From the NCBI RefSeq assembly GCF_006345805.1, contig NC_043015.1, positions 50,840,001 through 50,904,000 on the forward strand: 64,000 bases of DNA. The letters are read 5' to 3'. The translations under genes and the position numbers were made by a program. The notes under the pieces were generated by a model. It saw nothing but the letters and a program-made list of their open reading frames with translations, was not told the origin of the DNA and did no database searches. This document shows positions 31,805 through 63,461 of the stretch, piece by piece (the stretch's first letter is position 1; each line of letters opens with the position of its first letter). The DNA comes from Octopus sinensis. Lineage: Eukaryota.

Positions 31805-31899
31805 ATGTGCAGCGTGTTTTTGCAGATTGGTCAAGGAGGAAACCAAATCGGACAGTCCTTTTTCGATGCTGTCGGCATCAACGCTGGAACTAATAAATG
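31805..31899 (+). CDS. Divergent tubulin (zeta/eta or delta-like), coding exon 1
   Basis: MCSVFLQIGQGGNQIGQSFFDAV matches the tubulin QxGQCGNQIG motif; in-frame TGA upstream at 31766; donor ATG|gttagt, phase 2. Confidence 0.9.
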
Positions 31900-32316
31900 G
31901 TTAGTAATTTCACTCATAATTAAGTATTTCTAACTTATTTAAGCCATCAGACATTTTAATGTTCAGCGACTTTACCAAATAGTGTCTCACTTTTTAACTT
32001 ACCCCGCCAACTAACTTTGTTAAATTATAAATTCTTTTAAAATGCATATTTCTAAATGAAATTTGATACACGTACGCTTTCGGGGGTGTATATTATGGCT
32101 ACTGGTAGCATCTTAATAAAAAGAAACTTCTTTTTCTCCTTTTGCGGAGTTTCAAATTATTACCTGCCTTCCACGCTGACTTTTGAAAATTTCAGAGCTA
32201 CGTTTTCCGTAGTGGAATACTTGATAACTCGACCATAAATAGCTTATATATATATATATATATAAGAAATATTGAATTTCTAAATCTCTCGTAGAGACAT
32301 GTACGGTGGTGGGGCG

Positions 32317-32526
32317 ATAGAATGGTTGTATACTGTCAATCTAACAAGAACGTGACAGTAGGGGGTACACCACCGCTGTATAGCCCTAGGAACCATCGAA
32401 CGCCTCCTGATGGGGAAAAATGTGTCAAAGCCATCAGGAGGCGTTCGATGCTTCTAGGGCTATACAGCGGTGGTGTACCCCCTACTGTCACGTTCTTGTT
32501 AGATTGACAGTATACAACCATTCTAT
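32317..32526. mobile_element. Foldback MITE-like element (~96-bp arms, 17-nt loop), probably TA-flanked
   Basis: 32317-32413 versus 32431-32526 is nearly perfectly inverted; gives mirror-image ORFs on both strands. Confidence 0.8.
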
Positions 32527-32571
32527 ATATGTATATATATATATATATATATATATATATATATATATATA

Positions 32572-32972
32572 TACTAGCAGTATCGCCCGGCGTTGCTCGG
32601 GTTTGTAAGGGAAATAACTATATAAGCATTTTTAGAGAGTTATAGCCAAAAAATAGCAGAAAATGTATTAAAAATGGAAAAAAAAATGATGGTAAATTTA
32701 TTTAAAAATCGTTGATTTATCGTAGACATTTTTAGAGAGTTACTTCCCTTATATAATAGCGAAAAAATGCATTAAAATAGAAAAAAATGATGGTAATTTT
32801 TTTTTTAAATCGTAGACTCATCGTAGACGCGCGCTAATACCCAGAAGGGCTCGATATGAATCACGACTATAAGATACCCGGTTTTGGTTAAACTGCACCG
32901 CAAAATGTGGGAGTAGTTAGGAATCTAAATTGTAGGAGACAAACACATAACCTCTCTTTTATATATAAAGAT
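32572..32972 (+). mobile_element. Non-autonomous Helitron-like element
   Basis: 5' TACTAGCAGTATCGCCCGGCGTTGCTCGGG with a subterminal hairpin, 3' TTTTATATATAAAGAT; the 5' end is shared with 36322. Confidence 0.6.
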
Positions 32973-33534
32973 ATATATATATATATATATTATATATATA
33001 TATAGATATAGATATAGATATAGATTAACATAACCGGAAACTACCTCCACGAAAACGTATCATTAGAAAATTTCATTTGAAGATATGCATTTTAAAGAGA
33101 GTTATAAAAGAAATAAAGATGAGTGGAATACAATCACACTATGTATGTATAATGTACGTATGTTTATTTAATTATCTATTATATCTAAGTAATTATGGAT
33201 TACGTTTTCATGTCGTCTGTATTTTGCCGCGTGCTTGTAAAATACGGTCTGTAATAAATAGTATTCAGTCATTTATGTAACCGGATATTAATTGGTGGTT
33301 CACCGTAACTTCATAGCAACGGGTACCTAACGACCACAAACAAAACTTATCGGTAGACTTCTTTTTAGCTCCACTGCTCACAAGCTAACGATGTGCATAA
33401 TGTCTTTGTTCTCAACTTAAATTTATTGCGAAATCGTTAATGTTTAGCAATGAAAACACACGCACGCACGCACGCAAGCACGCACACACACACACACACG
33501 CAGGGCGACGAGATATATCATATATATATATATA

Positions 33535-33948
33535 TACAGTGATACCTCGCAGTACGAGTTTAATTCGTTTCATGACCGAGCTTGTCTGTAGGCAACCCGC
33601 CTACACGTTTTACGAATTTACTCGTTTTACAAATCAGTTTTCCCCATTGAAATTAACTAAAATATAATTAATCCGTTTCAGCACCGAAAAACGACTCAAA
33701 AATAAATTTTTAAAGGGTTTTAAAAGAGAAACGGTATAGTTACAGGTAAAAGGACAATTACAAAAAAGAGAGTGCAAAAGAAATTTGTAAACTGGTTTTA
33801 TTAAGTGAATTTCCTTACAGATGAGGAGATTTGTGTGCTCGTACTGCGGATTTCCGCTCGTATTTCAAGACAAAAATTTGCACGAGTCTCGGCTCGTACA
33901 GCAAATTACTCGTATAATGGGGCACTCATACTGCAAGTTTCTGCTGTA
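33535..33948. mobile_element. Tigger/pogo-like MITE
   Basis: TA-CAGTGATACCTCG...CTG-TA termini. Confidence 0.55.
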
Positions 33949-60344: not shown

Positions 60345-60720
60345 GGCACTCCATCAGTTATGACGACGAGGGTTCCAGTCGATCCAATCAACGGAACAGC
60401 CTGCTCGTGAAATTTAAGTGCAAGTGGCTGAGCACTCCACAGACACATGTACCCTTAACGTAGTTCTTGGGAAGATTCAGCATGACACAGTGTGACAAGG
60501 CTGGCTCTTTGAAATACGCGTACAACAGAAACAGGAAGAAAGAGTAAGAGAAAGTTGTGGTGAAAGAGTACAGCAGGGTTCACCACCAGCCCCTGCCGGA
60601 GCCTCGTGGAGCTTTAGGTGTTTTCACTCAATAAACACTCACAACGCCCGGTCTGGGAATCGAAACTGCGATCCTACAACCGCGAGTCCGCTACCCTAAC
60701 CACTGGGCCATTGCGCCTCC
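60345..60720 (-). mobile_element. SINE family B copy
   Basis: Reverse complement of 38271-38648. Confidence 0.8.
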
Positions 60721-61426
60721 ACCTGTCTGCCTGCCTTCATACATACAAACATGAAAAAGAGAGAAAACTCAACTGAATTGACAGAGTAGAGTTTAGATAA
60801 GATTGTTGATAGAACAAGTTCATTAAGTAAATTATAGTCTCACCCCCACCGCTCGCCGCTGCCGTAGCTAAAACATATCGAGTATTGTCGGGGTGGGTTG
60901 GTGGATACAGTAATGATACAAGATAAGCTCCAGAGAAATATATTGACAGTTGAATCAGGAGGTGAACCTTCAAGTAAATATTAAACCAGGATAAACAGAA
61001 GGCTCTTAGATAAGTATGGTAACAGATATATATATATATATATATATAATATATATATATATTTTTTTTTTTCAATATGTGACCGTGTGTGTGTGTGTGT
61101 GTGTGTGTGTGTGTGTATTGTTGGTGATTGTTTTTCTCCATCTTCCTTCTTTGGACTTTTTCTGTTTTCTGATGAAGAGCTCCGCTCGAACATGAAATCC
61201 TCTTTCTTTTCTTTCCTTTCCTGAGCGTCCAATAACACTGTACTTGTTCTACATCCTCGCATTGTTATTTTTTCTTCCTTGTTCTTGTTTAGATTGAGTA
61301 TATATATATATATATATATATATATATATATATATTATATATATATATATATATATATATATATATATATATATATATATATATATATATATATATATAT
61401 ATATATATATATATATATATATATAA

Positions 61427-61682
61427 ATAAATATAAGAGAGTTACCGTTAAGTGGTTAACTCTAGTGCTAAAAATAGCTCCTTATTCTGATATGGCCACC
61501 GAAGTTGTTTCCACAAAGAAATAACATTACCTTCAACGTAAGGAAAGTGAAATACAATGAAAAGATAGATTAATGCTGAACAATTGTTTCTTTATCAATA
61601 TAATATGCAATTATACTCACATATTTATCTATAAATCATCATCAGCGAGTTAACCACTTAACGGTAACTCTCTTATATTTAT
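61427..61682. mobile_element. MITE with perfect 36-bp terminal inverted repeats
   Basis: ATAAATATAAGAGAGTTACCGTTAAGTGGTTAACTC at 61427-61462 is inverted at 61647-61682. Confidence 0.75.
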
Positions 61683-62451
61683 GTATAAATTTGTATTGTC
61701 TCCCTGGTTTTTTATGTGCTAAGCCACTTGGTGTTAAACTGATGGTATTATTAAATTAATATCTAATTTTTCACCCTCATTTATGACTTATATATATATA
61801 TATTATATATATAATATATATATATATATATATATATATATATATATATATATATGTATGTATGTATATTATATTAAATTAGAGACAAAACCACTATTAG
61901 GCAAATCATACAATGAAAAATTTAAGCCAATACATAAGATTATTTAATTTATATTATTTAAATATATAACAAAATTATTAAAAAAATATAATTAATATAT
62001 CACTACGATCATTTCATGACTGTTAATTTCTTTAAATTTTCAAGTCACAGTCATTCATCAGGTGGTTTAAATATCTAAAATATAATCAATATTTTTAAGA
62101 TATAAATAATATATATAATATAATATAACAATTTTACTTATAATAAACTCTATTATCAAATATGATTATATCGAAATCGACTATAATGTTAAATATTAAC
62201 TTTAATTTATATGTATATATATGTAAATATATATATATATATATGTATATATATGCATATATAATATATATATATATATAATATATATATATTAATATAT
62301 ATATATATATATGTATATATATATATATATGTACATATATGTATATACATATATGTATATATATGTATATATCTATATATATATATATATATATATATAT
62401 ATATGTGTGTGTGTGTGTGTGTGTGTGTGTATATATATATATATATATAAG

Positions 62452-63160
62452 CTGTGTGACAGAGTGCCACACCCTAGCGGCTGAGGGAACCTGTGGAAGA
62501 GGTAGACCCAGGAAGACCTGGGATGAAGTGGTGAAGTACGACCTTTGAAATTTAGGCCTCACCAAGGAAACAACTAGTGACCGAGACTTTTGGAAATTTG
62601 CTGTGCTTGAGAAGATCCGGCAAGCCAAATAAGACCATAACCTCGTGGCCTATGCCAGGAGCATAACCAGCCCACTTATGCGTGCCTTTTCCTTCTTTGG
62701 ACACTAAACTCTGCTTGCGAAGACCTGTTGAGGCAAGTGAAATCAAAATCAAAATCAAATTCAATGACTGGCATCCGTGCTAGTGGGGTGCAAAGAGCAC
62801 CATACGAGTGTGATCGTTGTTAGAGTGGCAAACTGGCTTCCATGCCAGTGGCACATAAAAGGGCACCATTCGAGAGTGATCGTTACCAGCATCGCTTTAC
62901 TGGCACCTGTACTGGTGACATGTGTAAAAAGATTCAAGCGAGGTCGTTGCCAGTGCCACCTGACTGGCCTCCGTGCCGGTGGCACGTAAAAAGCACCCAC
63001 TACACTCTCGGAGTGGTTGGCGTTAGGAAGGGCATCCAGCTGTGGAAACTCTGCCAGATCAAGATTGGAGCCTGGTGCAGCCATCTGGTTCGCCAGCCCT
63101 CAGTCAAAATCGTCCAACCCATGGAAAGCAGACGTTAAACAATGATGATGATGATGATGA
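62452..63160 (+). mobile_element. Short 5'-truncated RTE copy 3 (ORF2 end plus 3'UTR plus GAT tail)
   Basis: [24 protein letters not shown] followed by the common 3'UTR; shows that the abundant GAT-tailed repeats are the RTE 3' end. Confidence 0.85.
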
Positions 63161-63402
63161 TATATATATCATATATTATATATAGGGGGAGAATTCACAA
63201 AAAGCAACAGACGAAGATAGGTGGTGTAGACAACAAACAGATGTATTAGTATAATGCTCAGGAAGTGAAAAAAGTCTTTACATTTCGAGCCTATGCTCTT
63301 CCACAGAAAGGAACACGGAAAGAAAGTAAAATAATAAAATAATAAAAGAACAATATATTTCAAATGTAAAACAAATAACTTTATTTCTCTGTTATTTTGC
63401 AG

Positions 63403-63461
63403 ATGTGACAATTTCACTGGCATTATACTTTTCCACAGTCTGACTGGTGGCACAGGAGCAG
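63403..63461 (+). CDS. Divergent tubulin, exon 5 (GTP-binding signature loop); gene continues beyond the window
   Basis: ttattttgcag acceptor, CAG|gtaagg donor; (R)CDNFTGIILFHSLTGGTGA(G) is the tubulin HSxxGGTGSG signature. Confidence 0.93.

Follow-up and report, generated by a model that had tools for sequence, protein, structure and literature searches.

A probable zeta-tubulin gene in Octopus sinensis, represented in a 64-kb genomic window by its five N-terminal exons

Introduction

This report concerns a stretch of 64,000 nucleotides (nt) of the Octopus sinensis genome (NCBI RefSeq assembly GCF_006345805.1, contig NC_043015.1, positions 50,840,001 to 50,904,000 of the forward strand), hereafter called the window, in which five small exons on the + strand can be joined into the beginning of a divergent tubulin gene. 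All positions given below without a locus name are counted from the first letter of this window. An earlier note on this DNA, made from the letters alone, had proposed these exons and had assigned them to the zeta/eta class of tubulins rather than to the delta class. Our analysis leads us to give a probability of about 0.9 to the reading that the five exons make up the first third, from the 5′ end, of the gene orthologous to zeta-tubulin in octopus (Tub6 or TUBZ1; the 'eta' of Paramecium). Among the tubulin classes zeta, a tubulin of centrioles and basal bodies, has been studied least, with functional work available from very few organisms.

Exon structure of the locus

Exon 1 (31805..31899, 95 nt) carries the start codon, strand S1 and the T1 nucleotide-binding loop (MCSVFLQIGQGGNQIG...), and it exits in phase 2 at the donor GTTAGT. 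It is followed by exon 2 (41769..41867, 99 nt; acceptor ...cttacag, donor GTATGA), which encodes a short H1-S2 loop and strand S2 (CSCIYQHHDQKLRSINVDSEWKTVNALKKNQLIR), and by exon 3 (48007..48059, 53 nt; acceptor ...attttag, donor GTGAGT), which encodes ANNIIHGLCGRGNNWAMG and the GRGNNWA block of the T3 loop. Helix H3 is found in exon 4 (50442..50520, 79 nt; YYGLNDPQEKDILQKTLQSVRKESER; acceptor ...cttcag, donor GTAATA), and strand S4 together with the T4 tubulin signature loop in exon 5 (63403..63461, 59 nt; CDNFTGIILFHSLTGGTGA(G); acceptor ...ttttgcag, donor GTAAGG). The remaining 539 nt of the window (63462..64000, +) belong to the 5′ part of intron 5, and the gene continues past the window end. 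All internal exon boundaries are canonical, with AG before and GT after the exon and a pyrimidine tract ahead of each acceptor; the entry phases of the five exons (0, 2, 2, 1 and 2) are consistent, and the exons are joined without a stop codon into 385 nt, which make up 128 codons and one further base. An in-frame stop precedes the ATG at 31805, with no other in-frame ATG between the two, and this ATG aligns with residue 1 of all relatives.

The order, lengths (95/99/53/79/59 nt) and consistent phases that the earlier note had given for these exons are thus upheld, as is the distance of 26 residues that it gave from NQIG to LRSINVDSE in the spliced peptide. Its 129th residue, a Gly, had been obtained by reading into the GT of the intron, which is not correct; the true codon is completed by exon 6 and also specifies Gly in Octopus vulgaris, so that the residue itself stands. 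The spliced peptide matches the Pfam Tubulin family (PF00091) far beyond chance (E=2.4e-20) and extends from S1 through the T4 loop, including the T1 motif GQGGNQ, the T3 motif GRGNNWA and the T4 motif TGGTGAG. The exons of the window encode the nucleotide-binding half of the tubulin GTPase domain.

The full-length gene and its public models

The orthologous locus of O. vulgaris, a close relative (L001, OX597832.1:57205778-57278848), can be aligned to the window with 89-97% identity and numerous indels, and was used to follow the gene beyond the window end. A composite protein, made of the peptide of the earlier note and the C-terminal part of a public O. vulgaris model (P0154, see below), maps onto L001 as 12 GT-AG exons of 95, 99, 53, 79, 59, 142, 171, 96, 28, 178, 158 and 72 nt. 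The O. vulgaris zeta gene is intact over 410 codons and spans about 45 kb, with seven exons between exon 5 and the stop codon (L001 48780-48921 ... 62997-63068). Since intron 5 measures 3005 nt in this species, exon 6 of O. sinensis is expected approximately 2.5 kb past the window end.

The exon boundaries may be compared with those of the Dreissena polymorpha gene, for which a complete NCBI model of the orthologue exists, with exons of 95, 96, 53, 79, 201, 159, 96... nt. The agreement between 95/99/53/79 nt in octopus and 95/96/53/79 nt in Dreissena places the first four introns at the same positions and phases in both genes, and this match validates the exon boundaries first proposed from the sequence. 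Octopus exons 5 and 6 (59+142 nt) together correspond to the single 201-nt exon 5 of Dreissena. The additional octopus intron splits this 201-nt exon just after the GGTGAG signature (L001 45716-48921 versus L002 7303-7503), and it was either gained in the cephalopod line or lost in the bivalve line.

Public gene models cover the locus only in part. A word-index search returned one record, XP_014789293.1 (P0001) from Octopus bimaculoides, a 113-residue protein named 'tubulin beta chain-like isoform X2', in which exons 2-4 are preceded by another first exon and followed by a short alternative end. This search missed P0154, the 351-residue 'tubulin delta chain-like' protein of O. vulgaris, although that protein shares 52 identical residues, and absence from that index is therefore no evidence of absence; P0154 was recovered by a profile search. 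The path of P0154 starts with an exon corresponding to window positions 21316-21371, passes through exons 2 and 3, and continues directly with 'FGSLVVEHLREAYP...', and as a consequence the model lacks exons 1, 4 and 5. Exon 5 is hence missing from both octopus public models examined, and exon 4 from the O. vulgaris model; the loss of exons 4 and 5 by skipping amounts to 138 nt and leaves the frame intact. The upstream exon used by the O. vulgaris model (21316..21371, +; MLNKRPMETEWLRQQVARG; donor GTAAGA) lies 10.4 kb upstream of the tubulin ATG and yields a non-tubulin N-terminus. Because it ends in phase 2, like exon 1, it could be joined in frame to exon 2, and it may represent a genuine alternative 5′ exon or an error of annotation; alternative isoforms may thus exist at the octopus zeta-tubulin locus.

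Counterparts of exons 1, 4 and 5 are present in two full-length cephalopod transcripts, P0003 (402 residues) and P0114 (409 residues), and in the cuttlefish model 'TUBD' (P0002), which shows that the complete form is the expressed form in cephalopods. With exons 1, 4 and 5 as proposed in the earlier note, the incomplete models regain the conserved N-terminus of tubulin and the signature loop T4. The description of the gene as hidden in that note is an overstatement: the locus is covered by partial public models, although these go under beta-like or delta-like names and are without exons 1, 4 and/or 5.

Assignment to the zeta class

Homologues were sought by an exhaustive phmmer search of 1.8 billion representative sequences with the part of the protein encoded by exons 2-4 (the public fragment P0001) as query. 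The search gave 56 hits in total, the best of which were the cuttlefish 'TUBD', proteins of a sponge, a shark and Trichoplax named 'tubulin delta chain(-like)', and the 'zeta tubulin' of Trypanosoma vivax and Leptomonas. In all of these relatives the LRSINVD block lies near residue 40 and not near residue 62, and the short H1-S2 loop is consequently a trait of the family. We also considered that an exon might have been missed in this part of the octopus gene; this explanation was ruled out, the loop being short in all zeta-tubulins and the exon lengths matching those of Dreissena.

A profile built from the phmmer hits recovers a clade that comprises sharks, coelacanth, amphibians, reptiles, clupeid fish, hemichordates, echinoderms and many molluscs, together with a nemertean, annelids, a sponge, a placozoan, a chytrid and oomycetes. 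No eutherian mammal and no ecdysozoan was found in the clade recovered by this profile search. Such a spread of taxa equals the published distribution of zeta-tubulin. Reference sequences and the labels Tub4, Tub5 and Tub6 were taken from PMC10063605, whose supplements make renewed use of the Findeisen dataset. The published Pfam spans are 6-197 for TiaTub6 versus 2-219 for TiaTub4, and 3-192 for XtTub6 versus 3-213 for XtTub4 (PMC10063605). We measured 6-197 for the Trichoplax and 3-193 for the Xenopus tropicalis member of the clade, which thus match the published Tub6 entries in species and Pfam coordinates, and 2-213 for human delta-tubulin. The 410-residue octopus composite matches PF00091 over residues 4-191 (E=2.1e-37), and its span of approximately 190 residues therefore falls with the compact GTPase domain of zeta, against about 211-219 residues in the other classes.

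A tree of alpha to zeta tubulins had been proposed as a check in the earlier note. Our references were human and mouse tubulins of the alpha, beta, gamma and epsilon classes, and delta-tubulin from human, a marsupial, echidna and turtle. In a neighbour-joining tree of 400 columns the zeta clade including octopus receives 98% bootstrap support and zeta plus delta 100%, whereas octopus groups with delta in 0% of replicates; the published topology is reproduced, with the Xenopus, Trichoplax and trypanosome zeta proteins in the octopus clade. When only the 122 columns encoded in the window are used, zeta is supported at 93% and the grouping of cephalopods with delta again at 0%. Hidden Markov models (HMMs) of the individual classes point in the same direction. 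The window peptide scores 159.7 bits against a zeta model built without cephalopods and 122.9 bits against one built from vertebrate zeta only, compared with 59.7 bits for beta, 41.6 for delta, 41.2 for epsilon, 31.6 for alpha and 29.1 for gamma. In the motif alignment the zeta blocks VDSE.K, GRGNNWA.GY.G, SGESPLQ.YN, an EPW-type T7 region and AYLHWYWK.G are all present, and none of the delta blocks is. The C-terminal blocks among them (SGESPLQ.YN, EPW-type T7 and AYLHWYWK.G..DF..AFE) belong to the part of the gene beyond the window and were seen in the O. vulgaris orthologue. The placement in the zeta/eta class and not in delta, as put forward in the earlier note, is thus borne out by the tree, the class HMMs, the length of the GTPase domain, the trypanosomatid zeta proteins among the phmmer hits, and the motifs.

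Selection and alternative readings

Between the window and O. vulgaris, 2 of the 385 coding bases differ, both at synonymous third positions in exon 5; exon 1 is identical at 95/95 nt, and exons 1-5 are identical at the protein level. In the 400-nt intron flanks of the same comparison 270 of 3812 aligned bases differ (7.1%), in addition to 376 gap columns, and the probability of two or fewer coding differences at the intron rate is 2.4e-10. This difference between coding and intron divergence demonstrates purifying selection on the gene, which argues strongly against a pseudogene. One might otherwise suppose that the locus is a decaying tubulin relic in this species, of which a few tidy N-terminal exons are left over, given that the downstream two thirds of the gene lie beyond the window, that the public models are fragmentary and that several conserved residues are changed. 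However, not a single non-synonymous change is found, every splice site is intact, and the O. vulgaris reading frame is open over all 410 codons. Among the changed residues, GQGG is common to squid/cuttlefish-like transcripts and hence represents an old, tolerated state. We regard a pseudogene as very unlikely.

Two other tubulin classes have been suggested by the names of public records. That the gene is the octopus delta-tubulin (the TUBD1 orthologue) would agree with the names 'tubulin delta chain-like' in O. vulgaris and 'TUBD' in cuttlefish; delta and zeta are sister classes, joined at 100% bootstrap, and a homologue search with human delta returned amniote TUBD1 only, giving no separate octopus delta. 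Yet the octopus protein joins genuine TUBD1 in none of the bootstrap replicates of either tree, its score against the delta HMM (41.6 bits) compares with 159.7 bits for zeta, and it has zeta blocks in place of the long H1-S2 loop, the GSGNNWA and the GTGEVIVQNYN of delta. Moreover, in species with a separate Tub4, the label 'delta-like' is also attached to proteins agreeing with published Tub6 entries, and a delta identity appears highly improbable to us. A divergent beta-tubulin-like paralogue, as implied by the name 'tubulin beta chain-like' of the O. bimaculoides record, has next to no probability. The best matches among solved structures are indeed beta-tubulins (E about 1e-17), and beta gives the second-best class HMM (59.7 bits), but none of the PDB matches comes from a closer tubulin class, so that among the classes with solved structures beta is simply the closest; the score against the zeta HMM is higher by 100 bits, alpha and beta are placed far off in the tree, and the H1-S2 loop of octopus is approximately 18 residues shorter than that of beta.

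Against the preferred assignment to zeta several points have to be set. The window covers only the N-terminal 128 of about 410 residues, and the intact exons 6-12 were seen in O. vulgaris and not in the species of the window. Cephalopod zeta deviates at conserved sites, with GQGG for GQCG and VDSEWKT for VDSEPKV, and the part derived from O. vulgaris has Tyr where most zeta-tubulins carry the Glu of EPWE. Both octopus public models use other first exons, and one of them skips exons 4 and 5 in frame. The tree was built by neighbour joining with vertebrate delta only and few outgroups, rather than by maximum likelihood on the full reference set. Finally, the octopus gene is known here from its sequence, and what may be said of its function would be transferred entirely from Xenopus and protists.

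Repeats and neighbouring genes

A 17-nt minisatellite (CTTCATTATGTCACCTT; 50216..50440, +; 13.3 copies) extends up to the 3′ splice site of exon 4, its last unit reading CTTCAG and reaching the AG acceptor. The orthologous array of O. vulgaris (L001 36601-37085) has at least 29 copies. It was observed that the public O. vulgaris model skips exactly exons 4 and 5, next to this minisatellite, which may affect splicing or may only confuse gene predictors. A more elaborate proposal is that cephalopods have a functionally altered zeta-tubulin, the Cys of the T1 loop being changed to Gly (GQGGNQ, in octopus and in squid/cuttlefish-like sequences), and that the octopus gene also produces an in-frame isoform skipping exons 4 and 5 (138 nt), which would lose helix H3, the T4 GGTGAG motif and hence nucleotide binding, and whose usage could be influenced by the length of the minisatellite (13 copies in the window against no fewer than 29 in O. 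vulgaris). We consider this proposal unlikely.

An interspersed repeat with the translation ...LLPNHMVLGSVPLHGTLG is present 15 times or more in the window, on both strands. The copy in intron 1 (40130..40201, +) is similar to the exon with which the O. bimaculoides 'isoform X2' begins (83% identical over 24 residues), and since this first exon matches the repeat, the start of isoform X2 is repeat-derived. Further copies are found, for example, at 2602-2673, 6773-6847, 8972-9031, 43941-44015 and 63834-63905. Two long open reading frames (ORFs) in introns of the tubulin region, 27811-28704 (-) and 52369-52935 (-), are 88% identical over 175 residues and contain ...RRLRWYGH..., with a weak PHD-finger match in the longer one; they look like fragments of one retroelement family. 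Upstream of the tubulin gene and on the same strand, a PLAT/LH2-domain gene extends from 7458-7925 (+) to about 17 kb (Pfam PLAT, E=1.3e-12 for the ORF at 7458-7925); for its O. vulgaris counterpart (L001 1-5767) a product of 419 residues was called, which also matches PLAT. Low-complexity and microsatellite tracts (TG/CA, CAT and similar) at 7047-7925, 23135-23924, 35095-35721, 39302-39832 and 42050-42826 yield spurious ORFs of 150-260 residues on both strands, with no protein-family matches.

Possible function

Zeta-, delta- and epsilon-tubulin form a co-conserved module, the ZED module, whose occurrence is limited to organisms that have centrioles and cilia; a set of epsilon and zeta that lacks delta is reported for some protists. 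In multiciliated cells of Xenopus, zeta-tubulin is a component of the basal foot, while in cycling cells it is found with TRiC/CCT instead of centrioles; localisation at basal bodies or the basal foot is known for Xenopus only. What the earlier note had stated on the ZED module, on the basal foot in Xenopus and on the absence of zeta from placental mammals, Drosophila and C. elegans agrees with this literature.

By analogy with these other organisms, octopus zeta-tubulin would bind GTP, would be folded with the aid of the TRiC/CCT chaperone, and would act at the basal bodies of ciliated cells as one member of the ZED module, presumably without polymerising into ordinary microtubules. The octopus protein most likely has the same role in ciliated epithelia, and perhaps also in sperm. 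The link to ciliated sensory epithelia that had been drawn in the earlier note is speculation.

Significance

The octopus apparently keeps a selected, intact zeta-tubulin gene. A literature search found no paper specifically on cephalopod zeta- or delta-tubulin. The present analysis supplies the correct N-terminal exon structure and corrects truncated models and misleading names (beta-like, delta-like), and the resulting re-annotation should be useful for surveys of cephalopod genes that serve centrioles and cilia. No new question arises from it: both zeta-tubulin and a mollusc possessing the three tubulins of the ZED module have been on record since 2014. The oyster Crassostrea gigas has delta, epsilon and zeta together (CagTub4/5/6, Findeisen dataset, 2014; PMC10063605), and a full ZED module in a mollusc is therefore not new. 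The suggestion in the earlier note that a cephalopod may retain the whole module would accordingly add nothing new at the level of the phylum.

Comparison with known tubulins

Zeta is the sixth eukaryotic tubulin class and is sister to delta. Its Xenopus representative (Tub6/TUBZ1) falls into the same clade as the octopus protein and has the same compact GTPase domain of about 190 residues. The two share VDSE.K and GRGNNWA.GY.G and, in the part derived from O. vulgaris, SGESPLQ.YN, EPW in the T7 region and AYLHWYWK.G, and they are of similar size (410 residues in the octopus composite, 422 in Xenopus), although the Xenopus protein is only about 35% identical to a cephalopod one (P0083 versus P0003), and octopus has GQGGNQ for GQCGNQ in T1 and VDSEWKT for VDSEPKV. 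Xenopus zeta-tubulin was reportedly studied by Turk et al. in 2015, and Findeisen et al. are said to have classified Xenopus Tub6 as zeta in 2014.

Delta-tubulin (TUBD1), which is required for triplet microtubules, is like zeta a centriolar member of the ZED module and lacks the canonical T7 motif of alpha-, beta- and gamma-tubulin. It differs from the octopus protein by its long H1-S2 loop (domain 2-213) and by the motifs GSGNNWA, MAGGTGSG and GTGEVIVQNYN, none of which is seen in octopus. The founding members of the zeta class are the trypanosomatid zeta-tubulins and Paramecium 'eta', the latter having been merged into zeta by Findeisen et al. The T. vivax and Leptomonas proteins are direct phmmer hits of the octopus fragment and belong to the same clade in the tree, but the trypanosomatid zeta and Paramecium 'eta' proteins are much longer than the octopus protein (494-682 residues), carry large insertions and lie at a distance of about 2.0.

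By distance, the nearest relatives outside the cephalopods are other molluscan zeta-tubulins, namely the 'tubulin delta chain-like' proteins of Dreissena, Ruditapes, Mya and Liolophura, and CagTub6 of C. gigas. The cephalopod branch is long, and the molluscs do not form one group in the tree (25% bootstrap). The octopus gene, at approximately 45 kb, is also considerably more extended than that of Dreissena, which occupies 17 kb.

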